From Dicyema japonicum (Eukaryota > Animalia > Dicyemida): DNA of 64,000 bases. The notes beneath the pieces are model-generated. The model saw nothing but the letters and a program-made list of their open reading frames with translations. It did no database searches and had not been told where the DNA came from. The DNA lies in contig RDEW01000014.1 in NCBI GenBank assembly GCA_011109175.1, positions 1,164,143 to 1,228,142 of the forward strand. Direction: 5' to 3'. The stretch's first letter is position 1; every line of letters begins with the position of its first letter. A program made the position numbers and the translations under genes. Shown here piece by piece: positions 14,689-55,770 of this stretch.

Positions 14689-15233
14689 TAAAATCTATAT
14701 AACGAAAATACCCAATTTATCATCACTCCATTGTTTGAAATGATTGATTTCTTTAGACGTAAAAACTTCTAAATTTTCTGATTCCGTTATTTCCAATAAA
14801 CATTTGCCGTCAGAATTAGTTTTCACACAACCATATGGAACTCCCACAAGGATTGGGTTTTCATTATTAACGAAAAATCTTTTATAATCCTTTAATAATT
14901 CCTAAATCTTTTGGAGTAATTTCCACCAATTGTTATCCAACCAATGGAAGTGTACAAATCAATGCATAATAATTCGCAAACATTCTCTTCTTGACAATCG
15001 CGTTTTAATACTCTTTTTGAGAAAATAGAGGTGCCAGTACCAGATATGGCTCCGGGACGCCATGGAATATCAATCGAATTATAACCAGGGATATTAATAA
15101 TTTCAGGTTTTTGCATCCATTTTAACAGCGCTGGTAAGGGCTACCAGCTCCGCAGCCAAAAAATTGAAATTTTCTTTATAATTTAAATTTCCCAATTTTT
15201 ATTAAAGAAAAGAGAGTAAAGGTTATATAGCGG

Positions 15234-15871
15234 NNNNNNNNNNNNNNNNNNNNNNNNNNNNNNNNNNNNNNNNNNNNNNNNNNNNNNNNNNNNNNNNNNN
15301 NNNNNNNNNNNNNNNNNNNNNNNNNNNNNNNNNNNNNNNNNNNNNNNNNNNNNNNNNNNNNNNNNNNNNNNNNNNNNNNNNNNNNNNNNNNNNNNNNNNN
15401 NNNNNNNNNNNNNNNNNNNNNNNNNNNNNNNNNNNNNNNNNNNNNNNNNNNNNNNNNNNNNNNNNNNNNNNNNNNNNNNNNNNNNNNNNNNNNNNNNNNN
15501 NNNNNNNNNNNNNNNNNNNNNNNNNNNNNNNNNNNNNNNNNNNNNNNNNNNNNNNNNNNNNNNNNNNNNNNNNNNNNNNNNNNNNNNNNNNNNNNNNNNN
15601 NNNNNNNNNNNNNNNNNNNNNNNNNNNNNNNNNNNNNNNNNNNNNNNNNNNNNNNNNNNNNNNNNNNNNNNNNNNNNNNNNNNNNNNNNNNNNNNNNNNN
15701 NNNNNNNNNNNNNNNNNNNNNNNNNNNNNNNNNNNNNNNNNNNNNNNNNNNNNNNNNNNNNNNNNNNNNNNNNNNNNNNNNNNNNNNNNNNNNNNNNNNN
15801 NNNNNNNNNNNNNNNNNNNNNNNNNNNNNNNNNNNNNNNNNNNNNNNNNNNNNNNNNNNNNNNNNNNNNNN
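15234..15871. other. Assembly gap (N run)
   Basis: Run of n. Confidence 1.
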
Positions 15872-17665
15872 CATAAAAGAACACAAGGACAAGAGATGGC
15901 AGCATCTAGTTAACCACCTCGACAGGAAAAGTACATCCCGACACTTCTGGAAAACTCTTAAACAAGTCAAGTCGGAGCTGGATGATGCAGACGGAACCGG
16001 AAAGTCTTCTCCTGAACACTTATGCCACCTACATCCTAACACCCTTATTACGCTGGAATTAGCTTCAAATCATTCTCGAAACACCTGGACATTAAGGTGC
16101 GTGCCCATAAACCGAAGAAGGAACCTTACCACGAACTATTCACAGATGACCAAGTCTTGGATGTGATCACCAGATCAAAGAGCTCACGGGCGTACGGGCC
16201 TGACAAAGTATCTTATATTCACCTAAAACACCTAAGCCACTACGCAATTGGCTACCTCACGCATATATACAATCTGTCCATTAACTATAATATTATTCCC
16301 AAGATTTGGAGAATTCTATCATAGACCGATATTGAAGGCTGGGAAACCAGAGACAGAACCTGCCTCCTACAGGCCTATTTCCGTTACCAGCACACTGTCA
16401 AAAATTATGGAGAAATTTGTATTATCAGTCATTATTTCGTATCTTCCACGTCCTATATTTCAACATGGTTTCCTCCGCGGTAGGTCCACCGCTACATATT
16501 TGGCAACCCTATCGCAGTTCATTGCCGACGGTTTTAACACCCATCTCCCGCCTCACAAACGCACAATCTTGGTTTCTATTGACATCAACAAAGCCTTTGA
16601 CACTGTTTCGAGGAAAATCCTGGTTGGAAAAATATTTTCTACTAATATTCGTCCGAATGTGAAATTATGGCTAGCCAACTTTTTGTCTGGAAGACGTAGA
16701 AGAGTAGTCAGTGGTGATCTCAGATCTAGATCACGATTACTACCGAACGGGGTACCCCAGGTGTCTCCACTTTCACCAATTCTATTCAACCTATTCCTAC
16801 ACGACCTACCTAATGATGGAGACTAAGATTCCCTGCTATTATCCTACACAAACGATGTAGTCATTGTAATACGGAACCGCTCGACGCAAGTCGCATCCCT
16901 TAAAACTCAGACAAATTGAACACTCTCCACGATTGGATTGTTGGCAATCAACCTACGATTTCTGCAACCAAGTCCATCTGTTCCACTTTCACTTCGGACC
17001 GTCGTTCCAAGGATGAACCGAGTATCTTTATTGGTCCCACTCGGATTCCAGTGACAAGGTCCCCCACTGTCCTTGGAGTCAAGTACGACAGTCTTCTCAA
17101 TTTCAACTCCCACGCAACAGAAATGATTACCAGGGGCCTCCAGAAAGTTAACGTTTTACGCGCCCTTGTCCGGAGGACCACGAGGAACATGGACTTTTCC
17201 GTTTCTACCCTCTACCAACAAACAATCGCGCCTGCCGTTGAGTATGCTTCCGTTGCATGGAGATTCACGCTATCGGGGTCTATGGTCCAAAGAATCAACT
17301 CGATACACCGGAAAACAATCAGTATGCTTTGCCCACGTAATGAATCAACAGTCGACCCAATACTCATAGCTAAGATCCGTAGTCGTGGCTCCGGATTTCT
17401 TCGCGTCTGTGAGGAAGATGGAAATCCGCTTCGCCTGATCCTTTCCATGGCAAGAGAAAACCGATTGGATAAGAAATTCCCCTCCCCGATCGGATTCCTC
17501 TGCAAGACCGAGAGAAGGCTCTTCCGGAAAGTAGTGGGGACGATGGAAGATCACAGACGTCGAATGGCACAATTGATTGCGAGGACTGGGATCACCTAAC
17601 TGTTTGACTCTTTTGTCTTTCTTTCTCGTTGTTCCCTGGGTTATTAAAATAAAAATAAAATAAAA
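15872..17665 (+). mobile_element. I-group (Ingi/Vingi-like) LINE, RT and 3' end
   Basis: GPD.VSYIHLKHL, SYRPIS, QHGF..GRST, IDINKAFD, NGVPQ.SPLSPILFN, VLGVKYDSLLNF; 3' end CCCTGGGTTATTAAAATAAAA. Confidence 0.88.
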
Positions 17666-20104: not shown

Positions 20105-21520
20105 TTTAGTTAGTTAAGTAACCCCAGCCTCACTAACTTGTAGAAGGCCAGCAGCTATGAAGTAGGACGCAGCAGATGTTGGTCGCTCCCATAGATCGTT
20201 TAGTCTTAGTCTGTAGAGGAACATTGTGCCAATTCATGACATTCAAATAGGTGATTTGTTGTCAACATGTGGAGGTTGCAAAAGAGACAAAGTATATCGT
20301 ATGTTGGTAGATATGAGTGGTGCCCACATCGTAGACGATCCAGGTTTACTCGGACGTCCCTTGAAAGAGAGGATTCTGATTGGTCTATTGGAGGAGGGGG
20401 TCGCTGTAATACTTTATTGTCTCCGAGTCTTCGGATGCTTCTCGTAGAAACAAAATCGTGTATCTGTTTCAGACGACTCCTGTCATTGGGGATGGAAGGA
20501 ATGGATGATAACATTGGAGACAGGTCACTGATTGTCATAATAATTCTCATTTTGTTTTGCGGCTTGCATAGGAAGTGGCAGGGGTGTTCTAGACTGTAGG
20601 CTTGGGAGAGGAACTGCAGGGCTCTCATTTCCAGATGGTTTCTAATTGGAAGGATCTTTGACTCCCAATGTAGATGATCGACAGGAGTTGATCTGAGACA
20701 TCCAGTAATTATTTTTTTTGTAGTTTGTCAATAGAAGTAAGAGAGGCAGAGGTTGACCAGCAAGGGCTTGCATAGTTAATAGTTGTTCGAATGAATTGTT
20801 TATGATGGTTAAGAGTTATTTGCTTTAGCCAAAGGAATGGCCTGACACAGCATTAAGTATGTTGATCTTGCGAGAAGCCTTTGTACATTGTTCCTCCACA
20901 CGTTTAGAGAAAGTTAGTAGTTAGTCATAAATAACTCCAAGTATTTTGAGATGTTTCGTAACGGTGAGTGGTTGTCCATGAACTGTTAAAATTGGTTGAA
21001 AAATTAGTTGGCGGCGATTGGACGTGAATACAGTGACGGTGGATTTCGATGGAGAGTGGGATAGGTGGTTTGCTCCAAGCCACACTTCAAGAGTGTTCAA
21101 GTAATTTTGAAAATCCTTCGTTGCATCGTTAACGTTTATGTCTTTAATCAGATTATTTGCATACAATAGAAGTGTCTTGGAATCGGTTGGAATATCGCTT
21201 AAGTGTAAGTTGAATAAGGTAGGTGACAAAACGGAGCTTTGGAAACTCCATTTGGAAGGAGTCTGTAATGAGATAGACATGACATAGTTTCAGCTCGATT
21301 AATTCTTCCAGAGAGAAAATTTGTAGCCAATTCTGAAGACGTGGAGGAATTCGAGATGCAAGAATTTTGTTACTTAGCACGCGCTTTGATGTTCGATCAA
21401 ACGCCTTGGTTAGGTCAATCGATGCAAGGATAGTCCGTTTGGGAGTATTATAACCGTTGAAACCAGAAATTTAGAAGATATCTTTTCAGAGTTATGTCCT
21501 CCAGATGTTGTTACCACCTG
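20105..21520 (-). mobile_element. Vingi-like LINE 3' half (RT + C-terminal zinc knuckle, no RNase H seen)
   Basis: QSSVLSPTLFNLHL, KILGVIYD; C-terminal NKVLQRPPPPI..ESSLSR..RVNL.RLRCGH..CLFC..TTNHLFEC; terminus GGCTGGGGTTAC. Confidence 0.75.
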
Positions 21521-21959
21521 GATAAATTTTAGATATTGTAATTGGCAGTTAAATAATATTTCAAAAATTACGACGCCGTATATATTTAGAGTGTTAATTC
21601 TACAATCGATTAGCAATACATCTACACTCATTAAGGACAATAGTTTTGAACTATACTGGATTAGATGATCAACTATTAGATATTGTAGTTGGCAGTTAAA
21701 TAATATTTCGAAAATTACAACGCCGTATATATTTAGAGTGTTAATTCTACAATCGATTAGCAATACATCTACACTCATTAAGGACAATAGTTTTGAACTA
21801 TACTGGATTAGATGATCAACTATTACCATTTGAACGGATACCCTGAGGGTTAAGAGGGCAACTAAAAGTTGTTTTAATGAGAAAAACAGATATTTCAAAG
21901 ACATTTTTGTGAAAATGAGAAAAGTCAATAAGAAAAAATAAAAGTAATAATTAATCAAC

Positions 21960-22460
21960 ACAGCAATCCATCCAATGTGGTCCCCGCCGACATTATCGAC
22001 GTTGCCTCTCACGATTGCGACAGAGATCAACTGAAAAAGCCACCGGGTCTCACGTGCGTCGTCGTGGCTTTTTAGTGTAGCTAAGCGTCAAAGTTTCTTT
22101 TGGAAGCGAAACGATTTCCCACATATCAGTTGTCTCGACCACAATCGGATTGAACTAATGTGAAAAACTATTTGATTATGAGTTATAACNTGAGAAAAGT
22201 CAATAAGAAAAAATAAAAGTAATAATTAATCAACACAGCAATCCATCCAATGTTGTCCTCGCCGACATTATCGACGTTGCCACTCACGATTGCGACAGAG
22301 ATCAACTGAAAAAGCCACCGGGGATCACGTGCGTCGTGGCTATTTAGTGTAGCTAGGCGTCAAAGTTTCTTTAGGAAGCGAAACGATTTCCCACATATCA
22401 GTTGTCTCGACCACAATCGGATTGAACTAATGTGAAAAACTATTTGATTATGAGTTATAA
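21960..22460 (-). mobile_element. CRE-clade 3' end (two tandem copies across a single-N join)
   Basis: RETRWLFQLISVAIVRGN matches the CRE C-terminal motif QKIGMAILRGN. Confidence 0.65.
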
Positions 22461-29329: not shown

Positions 29330-29675
29330 TTCCTAGCCAAAAGCTCTTGATAGGTCAATTCCCAAAATATTGGTGGCGTTACGGTATCTTTGATATGTTG
29401 CACACCTCCATCTGTGACTCCATAACGCATCAGCTGTGGATCTCTCTTCTCGAAAACCACTTTGACTATCTGGTAGGTATTTATAAGCAGATCCTTTTAT
29501 TCGTTCAAGCACAATGTTTGCCAAGACTTTGCGTAATGAATTTAGTAGTATGATGGGTCGCAAATTTTCGATCGGTCCTCTGTTTTTGTTGGTTTTTTGT
29601 ATGGGGATTAGTAGTCCCGTACCCAGAGGTAGAGTTGAGTTAGTTGAAAACATTTCATTTAGTAGTGTAGCGATT
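29330..29675 (-). mobile_element. RTE RT fragment truncated by gap
   Basis: LPLGTGLLIPIQK..LRPIILLNSLRK..QSGFR..RST..GIDLSRAF. Confidence 0.8.
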
Positions 29676-30533
29676 NNNNNNNNNNNNNNNNNNNNNNNNN
29701 NNNNNNNNNNNNNNNNNNNNNNNNNNNNNNNNNNNNNNNNNNNNNNNNNNNNNNNNNNNNNNNNNNNNNNNNNNNNNNNNNNNNNNNNNNNNNNNNNNNN
29801 NNNNNNNNNNNNNNNNNNNNNNNNNNNNNNNNNNNNNNNNNNNNNNNNNNNNNNNNNNNNNNNNNNNNNNNNNNNNNNNNNNNNNNNNNNNNNNNNNNNN
29901 NNNNNNNNNNNNNNNNNNNNNNNNNNNNNNNNNNNNNNNNNNNNNNNNNNNNNNNNNNNNNNNNNNNNNNNNNNNNNNNNNNNNNNNNNNNNNNNNNNNN
30001 NNNNNNNNNNNNNNNNNNNNNNNNNNNNNNNNNNNNNNNNNNNNNNNNNNNNNNNNNNNNNNNNNNNNNNNNNNNNNNNNNNNNNNNNNNNNNNNNNNNN
30101 NNNNNNNNNNNNNNNNNNNNNNNNNNNNNNNNNNNNNNNNNNNNNNNNNNNNNNNNNNNNNNNNNNNNNNNNNNNNNNNNNNNNNNNNNNNNNNNNNNNN
30201 NNNNNNNNNNNNNNNNNNNNNNNNNNNNNNNNNNNNNNNNNNNNNNNNNNNNNNNNNNNNNNNNNNNNNNNNNNNNNNNNNNNNNNNNNNNNNNNNNNNN
30301 NNNNNNNNNNNNNNNNNNNNNNNNNNNNNNNNNNNNNNNNNNNNNNNNNNNNNNNNNNNNNNNNNNNNNNNNNNNNNNNNNNNNNNNNNNNNNNNNNNNN
30401 NNNNNNNNNNNNNNNNNNNNNNNNNNNNNNNNNNNNNNNNNNNNNNNNNNNNNNNNNNNNNNNNNNNNNNNNNNNNNNNNNNNNNNNNNNNNNNNNNNNN
30501 NNNNNNNNNNNNNNNNNNNNNNNNNNNNNNNNN
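29676..30533. other. Assembly gap (N run)
   Basis: Run of n. Confidence 1.
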
Positions 30534-40535: not shown

Positions 40536-42200
40536 TCAAGAGGTGCATTTATTTGCACCACTGAGCTTAGTCGGGTCAAAAAACTGGAAAAACTTTGGAG
40601 TAAACTCTATTAGCCATCGAGGATCAATAGTGCTAGCTCCATGCATGTATTCTTTTGAAGTTAACATCAACTCATATACTACCCTTCTATATAAAACTAC
40701 TCTTCTCCCTAAAGAAGTAAAAATTCCCCCGTCGTTCAATGCGTTCAACGCGTGTTGCTGCTCAACCGCAGACACGAGGTATTGCACAGGGCAAGGGTTC
40801 ATAAAGTCGAAAGACATAAGGTCATTGATTCCCATGGCCTTTAGTTGGAGTGTTGTTGCCGCCAAGTTTATTGTCCTAATCTCGGGTACCTAATAATCAT
40901 AATCCACATTATTACTTGAGTCTTTAACATTTCTCGCTCAGTGTATAATCTGAAGCACTTACCTAGACCAGTTCTACCAGATCGCACCGCCCGTTGCTTC
41001 GCCAGTGCCGTACTATTAGAGTGATTTTCAGCTGGTCCATGCACGTTTTTTGAATTTTAAATCTACTGCTTTACAAAGCAGGGATCAAAGACGTAAAAAA
41101 TTCAGTCAATTGTCAGTGATGTCTCCCCGATGTTATTTGTCACCACAATCTGTAGGTTTCTATCAAAAAACTACCTGTCTAGATCCAGTGTGAGTAGTTT
41201 GAATATTCTGACTTGAATTTCCTGCAGAAAGAGCCCAATAGAATAATCATTTTCGGGATATTGGCACTCAAGAGTCCGCCTGCACAAAATCTCATATCCA
41301 GTATTAATTTTTTCATGCCCAGTTAAAAACAGCAAAATATCCCCTATAACAATAAAGTTTAAAAATACCACGTTTTTGCTTGAGGTGGATCTCTATAATG
41401 TGATTAAGACACCATCGAGGTAGTCGGGCTTCCGTGCTGAACATGACTTCCACTGGATCCTTCCAGGGATAATGAAAATTTGCTAATTAAGTCACAATTC
41501 TCACGATTGGTAGAAATACTTGGAAAATTTAACAGAATCTAACATCGAAGAGGTTACAATTAACTTCAGATCATTCCTTTTCAGCATAGCAACCTTCAGA
41601 AGTCCGAACAGGACCTCAGTGTTTACCGTTCACTCGTGAGTTTAGTCCACCATGATAAACAAATACAGCGCCAAATCAGGGTCAATCAATCACTTTCAGA
41701 ATCAGTCATGTACTTAATCTCGGTGTCCTTAGCAGTACAATCCTCAAATCGAATTGTATAACCAATCTGAATAGTTAATAACCAAAATATAACATCCTGA
41801 CCCAATCTACGGTTAAACTCTTCAGAAACTCGTTTGACACAGACATTGCTGCTACTCTACGAGGCTGAGTCCATCCAATCTTCCCATTAGCGGTATAACC
41901 GGCCTCGTGGCAGTGCTGTGTTATCTGAGTCGTCTTCCCTGAGCCCGTGTTCCAGATTACTATCAGAATCTGGTTGTCCTGGATCGCCTTGATCAGCTCG
42001 TATTTCAGATTCGTAATCGGAAAAGTGCTTATCTACTTAATTAGGAATCTTGGTCGATACTTTCCTCCAGTCTTGTGGGACGTTATTTGCATCTTCCATT
42101 CACTTTTGAAAAAGAACTACGCTGTTGTTTCTCTCAGACTCTCTCTGCGTATTTCAAATTGTCAACAAACTTGGAGTTTTAGTCCACGCATCATGTCTTA
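40536..42200 (-). pseudogene. DHX8: DEAH-box splicing helicase PRP22/DHX8 pseudogene, intron-containing and internally deleted
   Basis: [63 protein letters not shown]; several stops and frameshifts; 27-nt intron 41767-41793. Confidence 0.9.
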
Positions 42201-43914: not shown

Positions 43915-44474
43915 TACTTAGCACGCGCTTTGATGTTCGACCGAACGCCTTGGTTAGGTCGATCGATTCAAAGATAGTCCGTTTGGGAGTATTATAATTG
44001 TTAAAACCAGAAATTTAAAAGATATCTTTTTAGAGTTATCGTATGTCCTCCAGATGTTGTTAGCACGTGGATAAATATTAGATATTGTAGTTGGCAGTTA
44101 AATAATATTTCGAAAATTACAACGCCGTATATATTTAGTTCTTTAGAATGTTAGGGAATTCTACAATCGATTAGCAATACATATAAACTGATTAAGGACA
44201 ATAGTTTTGAACAATACTGGATTATGCTCAATTATTACGATTTGAACGGATACCCTGAGGGTTAAGAGGGCAACTAAAAGTTGTTTTAATGAGAAAAACA
44301 AATATTTCAAAGACATTTTTGTGAAAATGAGAAAAGTCAATAAGAAACAATAAAAGTAATAATTAATCAACACAGCAATCCATCCAATGTTGTCCTCGCC
44401 GACATTATCGACGTTGCCACTCACGATTGCGACAGAGATCAACTGAAAAAGCCACCGGGGATCACGTGCGTCGT
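43915..44474. repeat. Dispersed direct copy of 21371-22060 (LINE RT piece + CRE 3' end)
   Basis: Shared TACTTAGCACGCGCTTTGATGTTCG ... GAGATCAACTGAAAAAGCCACCGGG. Confidence 0.85.
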
Positions 44475-44481
44475 NAGCTGT

Positions 44482-44547
44482 TGGCTCTTTTCGTTCCTTT
44501 TTGGAATGGGTGACACCATTTCTGGTGAGCCACATGACACCACGCTA
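44482..44547 (-). ncRNA. HDV-like structured leader (copy E)
   Basis: P1 GGTGTC/GTCACC, P2 TGGCTC/GAGCCA, P3 ACC/GGT, P4 TTCC/GGAA, C-GAAAA. Confidence 0.62.
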
Positions 44548-44839
44548 ACATGAAAATTTCGAGGAAAAAAAGGTTGAAAAACACTGCTTTAGAGTACACA
44601 ATAATTTAACTACAACACAAACAGAAAACTAATTATTTAAATAATAAAATTATAATTTTGTTTTTGAAATTCTATTTGATTGCACCCTTTCCTGTGAAGA
44701 TATCATTTTTATCGTTAGTATTTTTTGGTAAGAAAAGTGACCTAAAATTATGTAAATAATTAACTTGATTACTTATTCTATCTATTTCTTTTTTAATTGT
44801 TAATTTGTTAAATATTATTTTTTTTGAATCATCAATTTA

Positions 44840-46482
44840 AAATCTTAAATTAATAATAAAAATACCTGTTTTTTAAGTCATTAATCTCCATGATTACATC
44901 CCTGTGGCCTTTCTGATAATGTCTCATCACATCTTCAATGTCAAATGTGCTCAAGACATTACTGAAGTTTTTATTGGTTACGAGAAACTGTAGTCGAATG
45001 ATAAACATAACTGCTAATCTCTCCACATTGGTTATATTTGTAAATTCTAAATATATTAATATAATACCCTCAGATATTGTCGACTTGAGTGCATATCTGT
45101 TATATTTACTAAAAGTAACTTCTAAATTGTCTCGTGTTAGTTGTGTGGTCTTTGTCGTTAAATAAATATTTCAAGTTATCCCTATGCATTATTTTGTAAT
45201 AACTTTTAGGTTGTTCGCTAAAATGAATAAAATATATTTGATTTTTTAATATTTTTGATCTCTTTGAGTTTGTGCAATCTCCAAAAACTGAGAATATATT
45301 TAGCTGCCGCGTAGATACGTTTTTTGAAGTTCTTTGATCTCTCCAAATTCTGAACCTTGATAGTAAAACCAGACCCAAGTATCCCCTTAAATATAATTTA
45401 CTCAATAATAGGTTAAATAAGGGAAGTAATAATATTACGGCTGGTAAACCGAAAAATGAGATCCCAATGATCGATCAGATGGAGGCGATGATTCTCCCAG
45501 TTGTCGTTGAAGGGACACTGTCACCGTACCCAACCGTACACAAAGTTATCTTAAAAATTATAGTAAGTATTTAAAATTCAAATGGGGGACAGCACTTACA
45601 GGGTTCATTGTAAAAAAATTGATAAAGGATAGACAAGCAAACGCACCAACAAGCTTCCCACACCACGTGATGGGCACAATATCACCATAACTAACAGTTG
45701 TCAATGATATCTATAAAAATATAATTAATAGCAATAATTATAGACATACCACACTCCACCATAAATTATCAGCATAGTTTTTGAATTGTTGGTTGTTGTC
45801 CTTCTCTGCAATGTATATTCCATATGCCGCGATTATTAGAGACAAAAACCCAACGTAAATAGACGTTGAAAGTTCCTTCTTAAAACAAAAATTACTTTTC
45901 TGTGCTGGATGATCACTGAAGTTAATAATTCCATTGATCCAACTATTCTGTTCATGTGGAAAACACGGATAATCTGGAATAAACGTAATCCCTGAATAAC
46001 AGATGTCGCGTATAAGTCCTGGTTAGTGGCTAAACTGACCAACGAAAATCCAGAAATTATAATAATTAAATCTTTTTGTTAATCAAAATTAAACCAATTA
46101 CGCATTGGGGTTTCCTCGTGAATCTGAGTCGACCAATCAGTCCCCTGTACTTTCTCTTGTATCCACAAACTAAAAGACGGATGAAAAACTCAACTGTAAG
46201 CAAACAGAGTATTAAAAATTCCTTTAATTTATCTAAAAAACTACAATAAAAATCAATGGTTTTTTAAGGGTATCCTTAAACTTATCAACTGAGGCAACAA
46301 TACTAATGGAGATTGAACCCAAAATGATTATAAAACTGGAATATATAAAAAATATACATTAAAATTTGATATCCAATTGCAAAACTGGTATTTGGCTTTT
46401 CAAAAAAAAAGTAAAGCTTAGTTTTTATTCTGAAGATTTTTCTATTATATATTTTATTTTCGTGTAGTACGGTGGAACTCAT
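44840..46482 (-). CDS. KCNQ: KCNQ (Kv7) voltage-gated potassium channel with duplicated pore/S6 exon; functional status uncertain
   Basis: ATG 46482; exons 46245-46335 (91), 46095-46221 (127), 45896-46071 (176), 45750-45875 (126), 45600-45710 (111, A), 45439-45549 (111, B), then GILGSGF..AAKYILSFWR and helix B/C LQFLV..F..VL..FDIEDV..HY.KGH. Confidence 0.93.
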
Positions 46483-54181: not shown

Positions 54182-54793
54182 ATAATTCTAATTGGATCAC
54201 TTGTGTTGAGTATTTAGAGAATTATTTGGTCACAGCCTCCGGTGATTCTATCGTGAGAGTTTGGATCGATGATAAATGCATCATAGAAGCTGGTTAACAA
54301 TTTATGATTATTTTCAGAGATTGAAGGCATTTGTTCACTTCTCAGGTTCTCCACTGATGGGATTAGAGTTGTCGCGGGTTTTGATTCAGTAATTTGTTAA
54401 ATAATGTTCAGGGATCAATGGGAGTTCTGAACGTAGAGAAAAAGTGTTATTCCCCCATAATCAGTGGCCAAAATGGGAATATACTCTCAGCCGCAGTGCA
54501 TGCGGCCAATAAACTGTTAGTAACAGCAACTGAATTCTCCTTTAATGTTTGGGAGATTCGTGAGACCAATTATTATGACAAACCAGCATTTATAGTTGAC
54601 GTTGGGGGTAAAACCTCCTCACTTTTACTTTTCCACCCAAACGGGAGGATCATAACCTGTGGATTTACTAATGGTTCTGTCGATATTATTGACTGGCAGG
54701 AAGGGGATATCCGTAAAATAAAGTTTTTAAATGACTTATTGACAGCTTCCACAATTCTAAGATCATCGGTCTCCAGTTTATCATGGAAGGAAC
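54182..54793 (+). CDS. WDR90: WD40-repeat protein, WDR90/POC16-like (partial; cut by gap)
   Basis: Introns 54293-54317 and 54389-54411 give VTASGDSIVRVW..IIEA|EIEG..FSTDGIRV..|GSMGVLNV..Y..FHPNGR..CGFTNGSV, resembling the WDR90 repeat region as recalled; upstream exons unresolved. Confidence 0.6.
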
Positions 54794-55592
54794 NNNNNNN
54801 NNNNNNNNNNNNNNNNNNNNNNNNNNNNNNNNNNNNNNNNNNNNNNNNNNNNNNNNNNNNNNNNNNNNNNNNNNNNNNNNNNNNNNNNNNNNNNNNNNNN
54901 NNNNNNNNNNNNNNNNNNNNNNNNNNNNNNNNNNNNNNNNNNNNNNNNNNNNNNNNNNNNNNNNNNNNNNNNNNNNNNNNNNNNNNNNNNNNNNNNNNNN
55001 NNNNNNNNNNNNNNNNNNNNNNNNNNNNNNNNNNNNNNNNNNNNNNNNNNNNNNNNNNNNNNNNNNNNNNNNNNNNNNNNNNNNNNNNNNNNNNNNNNNN
55101 NNNNNNNNNNNNNNNNNNNNNNNNNNNNNNNNNNNNNNNNNNNNNNNNNNNNNNNNNNNNNNNNNNNNNNNNNNNNNNNNNNNNNNNNNNNNNNNNNNNN
55201 NNNNNNNNNNNNNNNNNNNNNNNNNNNNNNNNNNNNNNNNNNNNNNNNNNNNNNNNNNNNNNNNNNNNNNNNNNNNNNNNNNNNNNNNNNNNNNNNNNNN
55301 NNNNNNNNNNNNNNNNNNNNNNNNNNNNNNNNNNNNNNNNNNNNNNNNNNNNNNNNNNNNNNNNNNNNNNNNNNNNNNNNNNNNNNNNNNNNNNNNNNNN
55401 NNNNNNNNNNNNNNNNNNNNNNNNNNNNNNNNNNNNNNNNNNNNNNNNNNNNNNNNNNNNNNNNNNNNNNNNNNNNNNNNNNNNNNNNNNNNNNNNNNNN
55501 NNNNNNNNNNNNNNNNNNNNNNNNNNNNNNNNNNNNNNNNNNNNNNNNNNNNNNNNNNNNNNNNNNNNNNNNNNNNNNNNNNNNNNNNNNNN
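54794..55592. other. Assembly gap (N run)
   Basis: Run of n. Confidence 1.
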
Positions 55593-55770
55593 ACGTCTGG
55601 AAGATCTTTGGTCTGGGACGCAACTTGCATAGACACGTTCTCAAGCACGAACATTTTTAAACCTGGAGCAGCTGCTTCGACTGCGGAAAACCTAAAAATC
55701 AAGAAATATTCTTGCCTCGGGGATCGCTACCGATTTACAATCCACTCAGGAGGCTTCCTCAACTGACATT
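55593..55770 (+). mobile_element. CRE 3' fragment, same family as 3278-6330, with internal deletions
   Basis: SGRSLVWDATCIDTFSSTNIFK..GAAASTA.NLKIKKYSCLGDRYRFT..GFLN nearly identical to the 3278 ORF C-terminus. Confidence 0.88.

Follow-up and report, generated by a model that had tools for sequence, protein, structure and literature searches.

A decaying KCNQ copy in the Dicyema japonicum assembly and the tandem, probably mutually exclusive pore/S6 exons of its intact counterpart

Exons 8 and 8a of CACNA1C, which encode IS6, are an example of mutually exclusive exons. Substitutions between tandem duplicated exons are rare events of ancient origin, and voltage-gated ion channels are strongly enriched for them, with exons 5a/5b of SCN genes and Drosophila slowpoke among the examples (PMC9741552; PMC12772994). 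The two pore exons of a Dicyema japonicum K+ channel gene that are described here, A and B, are like such channel exon pairs in being adjacent, homologous, equal in length and in phase, in encoding a transmembrane/pore segment, in their ancient origin, in the purifying selection on both and in the one candidate conserved intronic element nearby. They are unlike them in that the exchange would involve the selectivity filter together with the whole of S6, and in their host, whose introns measure 20-23 nt and in which neither neurons nor muscle are recognisable. Among animals, introns this short are known only from myxozoans and D. japonicum (PMC13644364), and dicyemids are reported to keep many tetrameric channels though they are without neurons and muscle (PMC6543705). 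Text searches of the literature returned no report of a KCNQ pore exon substitution or of a dicyemid KCNQ.

With human KCNQ1-5 and invertebrate KCNQs the gene shares segments S1-S6, a GYG pore, a PAG gate in S6 with GILGSGF behind it, a helix A that contains IPAAA (in the contig haplotype introduced below), helices B and C (PF03520) and a heptad tail. What sets it apart from these channels is its very small length (about 440 aa) and strong divergence, with Gln in place of the first S4 arginine. It lies in a 64-kb window, by which the whole analysed stretch of DNA is meant and to which all positions refer, and was modelled by three-frame reading with exact placement of introns on the minus strand. 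Judged from its sequence, the locus is a compact KCNQ gene of about 11-12 exons at 44650-46482 (−), with introns of 20-53 nt; the form present in the window is a decayed haplotype, H1. The model aligns along its length, helices A and B/C included, with four outgroup KCNQs, which are relatives found by phmmer with exon 5.

According to this alignment, exons 1-5 (46482-46358, 46335-46245, 46221-46095, 46071-45896 and 45875-45750, (−)) encode the N-terminus and S1-S5; in the window copy introns 1-4 measure 22, 23, 23 and 20 nt, with GT-AG borders in all four, and the joined exons run from the ATG at 46482 over 645 nt, that is 215 codons, in frame and without a stop. Intron 5 (45711-45749 (−), 39 nt, GTATGT...TATAG) lies upstream of exon A, and downstream of the exon pair follows exon 7 (45204-45385 (−)), with the post-S6 motif GILGSGF and helix A. 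Joined to exon 7, exon B gives the expected pore and S6 gate of a six-TM channel, a TxGYG filter and FFxLPA/GILGSGF (the slash marking the junction), and exon A gives a variant gate, MNP/G instead of PAG. Exons 8 and 9 are each preceded by a 22-nt intron in the window gene model, the second of which is intron 8 (45097-45118 (−)). Exon 9 (44866-45096 (−)) encodes the KCNQ C-terminal helices B and C, by alignment and by its match to Pfam KCNQ_channel PF03520 (27.8 bits, cutoff 25); exons A and B both score above the cutoff for Pfam Ion_trans_2. Exon 10 (44843-44765 (−)) begins a heptad-repeat tail, the rest of which would be encoded, beyond a putative 23-nt intron (44764-44742 (−)), by an inferred exon 11 (44741 to about 44650 (−)). 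Helix D is a probable assignment for this part, seen only as a clean 3-4 hydrophobic repeat.

A phmmer search with exon 5 against 1.84 billion protein representatives gave best matches of only 57-60% identity, from other animals; a word-index protein search with exon 9 gave no match, so that no product of the gene, annotated or derived from transcripts, was found there, and local tblastn detected neither a third copy of the pore exon nor a second KCNQ gene in the 64-kb window. Among the KCNQ relatives, P0001 (GCA_905368565.1, L003:3001-10078) is a 1303-aa prediction from a different eukaryote genome that fuses three tandem KCNQ-like units, the middle one of which is without the GYG filter segment (…LWWSITIPGKFVAS…), as a result of faulty gene modelling or because it is a paralogue that has no pore. 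P0056 derives from a transcript contig and P0007 lies on a 1.1-kb metagenome contig.

The preliminary description had placed a pore/S6 exon with an SYG filter at 45600-45710 (exon A, (−)) and a second one, interrupted by TGA, at 45439-45549 (exon B, (−)), each of 37 codons, in phase 0-0, with GT/AG borders and a 50-nt intron between them; translation of the minus strand and the sequence itself bear all of this out. The exons are thus adjacent, 111 nt each, with splice sites of their own. In the window, exon A encodes a 37-aa peptide with the filter TTVSYGD and a C-terminal FFTMNP, bordered by ...tatag upstream and gtaagt downstream, and among PDB entries it matches the KCNQ5 pore best (E=3.5e-5). 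Exon B, a canonical invertebrate-KCNQ pore, likewise reads as 37 codons; it has CTVGYGD and SFFGLPA, is interrupted by an in-frame TGA (T=45477, G=45476, A=45475) and is bordered by ...ttaag and gtaata. The two are homologous (tblastn of exon A against 45549-45445, E=1.5e-4). Exon A also holds the palindrome CACGTG at 45664-45669 (−).

The window copy was compared with DNA contigs of the same organism from four public runs (X1-X4) of one sample; these contigs read straight through introns and are therefore DNA and not RNA. The runs belong to a set from 2019 with Nextera libraries in it, in agreement with the genome paper (PMC6736024). The contig haplotype was reconstructed by means of tabulated differences between contigs and window and not of the raw reads themselves, and contigs drop minor variants, which makes allele frequencies uncertain. 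Over 1.9 kb, 39 single-base differences and two to three single-base indels separate the window from the contigs (about 2%), and wherever a run has coverage of a differing site, the non-window letter is the sole or main path there. Window-type contigs are seen only at 45050, 45692, 45766/7 and 46302. In the contigs of the four runs, the intact gene, with GYG in both exons, thus forms the main haplotype or the only one.

At the filter of exon A (45692), the window has AGT (Ser) and the contigs of all four runs have GGT (Gly), both alleles being present in X1; at 45611, FFTMNP of the window is FFAMNP in the contig haplotype, and in both forms the gate motif is altered relative to the canonical FFALPA of B, as had been described. 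In exon B, X2, X3 and X4 contigs have GGA (Gly) for the TGA at 45477, which agrees with the earlier suspicion that it was an allele or an error, and FFGLPA (45449) is the canonical FFALPA. Exon 7 of the window carries TAG at 45220-45218 (contig haplotype AAG), TAA at 45208-45206 (CAA) and, at 45310, Ala where KCNQs have Pro (CCG in the contig haplotype). The donor of intron 8 at 45118 is TT in the window; because the contigs have GT, the odd donor is a plain lesion, which calls for care when unusual micro-intron ends are read from the reference by itself. In exon 10, TAA at 44839-44837 is GGA in the X2 contig, and near 44723 the window is one nucleotide short, a frameshift, where the X2 contig has the base. 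Beyond the TGA of exon B, the window copy thus has three more premature stops, a lost donor and a frameshift. With the base near 44723 restored, as in X2, the tail is open; in the window it is closed. X2 is the only contig haplotype open across the entire tail, from start to stop, with a frame of about 440 codons whether exon A or exon B is used; the window copy has no such intact frame.

At the 3′ end of the gene (window 44717-44839 (−)), at least three haplotypes occur in the one sample. The X3 contig has the window's TAA (44839-37), is without the 44723 base and shows a 1-nt loss of its own in the A-run at 44818. Variants that disable the KCNQ tail seem common in the sample, and since X3 shares the 3′ TAA and the missing base, the tail, or even the gene as a whole, may be under relaxed constraint in this population.

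The reading that we consider probable is that the window holds a decaying KCNQ copy of which SYG and TGA are private lesions, and that the intact gene possesses an old, selected exon pair, most likely a mutually exclusive one. Its second part is carried by the comparison of A with B, for which the contig-haplotype forms of both exons were used. They agree in 16 of 37 residues and 55 of 111 bases, and the identities at codon positions 1, 2 and 3 are 21, 24 and 10 of 37 (57-65% vs 27%; chi-square, p=0.003). When sequences were brought to the same divergence by neutral simulation (n=20,000), TVGYGD was kept in none and 12% were free of stops. Third positions at chance level, with first and second positions held, argue for protein-level selection that long kept both A and B. 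The anatomy of the mutually exclusive type and the age of the duplication, both proposed in the preliminary description, find support in the equal length, the shared phase and these saturated third positions.

It could be argued that the intact gene uses one pore exon only, the other being a silent relic of the duplication, and this is the alternative that survives best, although we regard it as unlikely. Exon A is the more derived, with 17-20 of 37 residues identical to outgroup KCNQ pores as against 21-26 for exon B (26/37 to three of them); no product of the gene is found among the protein-library matches, double inclusion of A and B would escape nonsense-mediated decay, and a mechanism of exclusion was not detected. 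However, third positions are saturated, yet first and second positions, length, phase, splice sites and TVGYGD are kept in both exons, and not one of the neutral runs retained the filter. Moreover, ancestral residues that are gone from one exon persist in its partner: the Trp and Lys of TW.GK in exon A, and ten residues lost in A in exon B. The gate proline, in turn, is shifted by one place in A (AMNP/G vs ALPA/G in B). Since two filter-S6 units in one subunit are topologically senseless, A and B are best read as alternatives, and a mutually exclusive pore/S6 exon pair in the intact gene is the likeliest interpretation of the sequence. Either A or B would be spliced in, and the two resulting isoforms would differ in the outer pore and the S6 gate, the B isoform with the canonical ...FFALPA/G and the A isoform with ...FFAMNP/G.

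The introns around the pair, intron 5 (39 nt), the A-B intron (45550-45599 (−), 50 nt) and the intron after exon B (45386-45438 (−), 53 nt), have about twice the length of the gene's other introns, and the splice sites of the pair are all U2-type. A C-rich 10-mer, TCCCCCATTT, is common to the introns after A and after B, at 45580-45589 and 45415-45424, 11 and 15 nt past the donors. Its exact sequence occurs once in the 64-kb window; the second site reads TCCCTTATTT in the window copy and is intact only in the contig haplotype. A shared word of this length has p=0.011 under shuffling, and the two introns otherwise align at chance level. The 10-mer is at most a candidate regulatory element. Duplex and fold z-scores for competing RNA structures of the docking/selector kind were not significant, and because inclusion of A and B together stays in frame, nonsense-mediated decay could not police exclusivity. 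We suggest, as a tentative proposal held well below the confidence given to the probable reading above, that the intact gene yields two isoforms from an ancient, exclusive filter-plus-S6 pair, one with the canonical PAG gate and one with an NPG gate, the choice being policed by TCCCCCATTT after each exon. If true, this would be the first described KCNQ pore-exon switch and a test case for exclusion in a spliceosome tuned to introns of 20-23 nt.

As to the window copy, the side on which the changes lie can be read from conserved KCNQ positions. In comparison with the four outgroups, a deviant residue stands on the window copy at about ten of them, including Gly in the filter, Asp in the HMDR that follows S4, Ala in FFAL of exons A and B alike, Pro in IPAAA of helix A and Tyr in PYD; the contig haplotype deviates at two, both in exon 7. 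The coding differences, over 1419 bases, amount to 22.5 non-synonymous and 10.5 synonymous ones, and the resulting pN/pS of 0.58 is as expected when one lineage is neutral and the other constrained. A bias from GC to AT marks the 33 coding substitutions, and a strong transition bias is present among the 39 differences; random placement of the same substitutions predicts 2.15 stops, against four seen (p=0.17). Multiple lesions, near-neutral substitutions and an intact counterpart in the sample are what a decaying copy should display, so the earlier suggestion of a decaying locus is true of the window copy, whose lesions are private to it relative to the contig haplotype. SYG and TGA, as two lesions among many in a decaying block, are then damage and not evolved features. 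Kept introns, scattered stops, loss of a splice site, a frameshift and the near-neutral pattern, as well as the intact counterpart in the same sample and the decay of the adjoining gene, liken the copy to unprocessed pseudogenes or degenerate haplotypes; unlike a typical unprocessed pseudogene, it differs by only about 2% from the intact version and has low depth in a paired-end library.

This adjoining gene, at 40540-42035 (−), is a DHX8/PRP22-like DEAH helicase gene with tiny introns (PDB 6hys DHX8, E=5.8e-23). Its Walker A motif reads WNTGSGKT in place of GETGSGKT, its DEAH box D*THE*T (41656-41627) with stops inside (asterisks) and its motif VI QRAVRSGR (40996-40967), and at least four further stops fall at conserved positions, among them in 41407-41384 and 41119-41048. 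By these changes it is identified as a pseudogene in the window. DHX8/PRP22 is an essential splicing factor, and an intact copy must therefore exist elsewhere. About 120 nt downstream of the KCNQ stop a repeated element begins (44161-44535 (−)), and a close copy of its long ORF (…VDNVGEDNIGWIAVLINYYFY…) lies at 21410-22030 (−); a single N stands at about 44475. The window consists largely of LINE/RT ORFs and N gaps (about 15200-15900, 29500-30500 and 54790-55600).

Errors of the reference assembly or its consensus, with SYG, TGA and the other lesions present in no real molecule, would be another source of the differences, and the assembly was indeed merged from Illumina and PacBio assemblies and haplotype-merged (PMC6736024), while 35 of the 39 sites, 45477 included, are without a window-type contig in X1-X4. 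Such an origin is nevertheless very unlikely. Long-read error would look different, since nearly all of the differences are substitutions, strongly biased to transitions and from GC to AT, and indels are almost absent; the window alleles are present in contigs at the four places named above, and the neighbouring gene has decayed likewise.

According to the genome paper, the sample was pooled from a single octopus, heterozygosity was 1.24% and haplotypes were merged (PMC6736024), so that a minor haplotype may have entered the reference. A haplotype with a dead DHX8 could hardly be a simple allele that turns homozygous, and the window block is possibly a polymorphic duplicate or otherwise low-copy DNA. 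A fixed paralogue at equal depth was considered as well and judged unlikely: contig depth in X4 is 697, no more than the sum of the two contig sub-haplotypes at the bubble at 45050 (339+377), which leaves little room for the window haplotype if these values are mean word depths.

Very unlikely, too, is the switch that the preliminary description had proposed, in which the choice of exon decides whether the subunit is a canonical GYG one (B) or an SYG one that does not conduct or is modulatory (A), the TGA being an error or a rare allele. Gly-to-Ser mutations of the filter are dominant-negative in human KCNQs (KCNQ4 G285S, KCNQ1 G314S), and the Ser of exon A in the window lies at the same filter residue. 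The exon anatomy suits alternative use, the TGA is not fixed, and the Ser allele is real in the sample, as the window-type contigs at 45692 in X1 demonstrate. However, GGT (Gly) is the main or only path at this site in four of four runs, and Ser sits on the lesion-laden window copy, with its four stops, dead donor and frameshift, to which it is joined through the window sequence and not through a spanning read. The other difference in exon A, T for the conserved A of FFAL, is likewise a degenerate state of the window copy. Unlike KCNQ4 G285S and KCNQ1 G314S, the Ser belongs to a dead copy with many degenerate changes and not to a functional isoform, the main haplotype having Gly. Exon B as a regulated poison exon, its stop triggering transcript decay, has next to no probability: a conserved stop is the defining feature of such exons, and although the window shows an in-frame TGA in a cassette-like exon, the X2, X3 and X4 contigs of the main haplotype read GGA, and B is the best-conserved, canonical pore sequence. 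Recoding of the TGA by selenocysteine, a variant code or editing was dropped as well, since the other haplotype simply has GGA.

For the biology of Dicyema this means, first, that a 'dominant-negative' SYG exon with a stop-interrupted partner is damage of the reference copy and should not be carried forward as biology, the reference sequence of the KCNQ gene misrepresenting the common haplotype. A decayed KCNQ beside a decayed essential helicase, at low read depth, adds to the hints of many unprocessed dead copies in the assembly. Second, there remains a modest but real result, an old and selectively kept duplication of a filter/S6 exon in the KCNQ of an animal with no recognisable neurons or muscle. 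With introns of 39, 50 and 53 nt among those of 20-23 nt, and one shared 10-mer, the gene offers a compact system for the study of exon exclusion; and if both exons are used, KCNQ would join those channel families in which exon substitution makes the pore more diverse.
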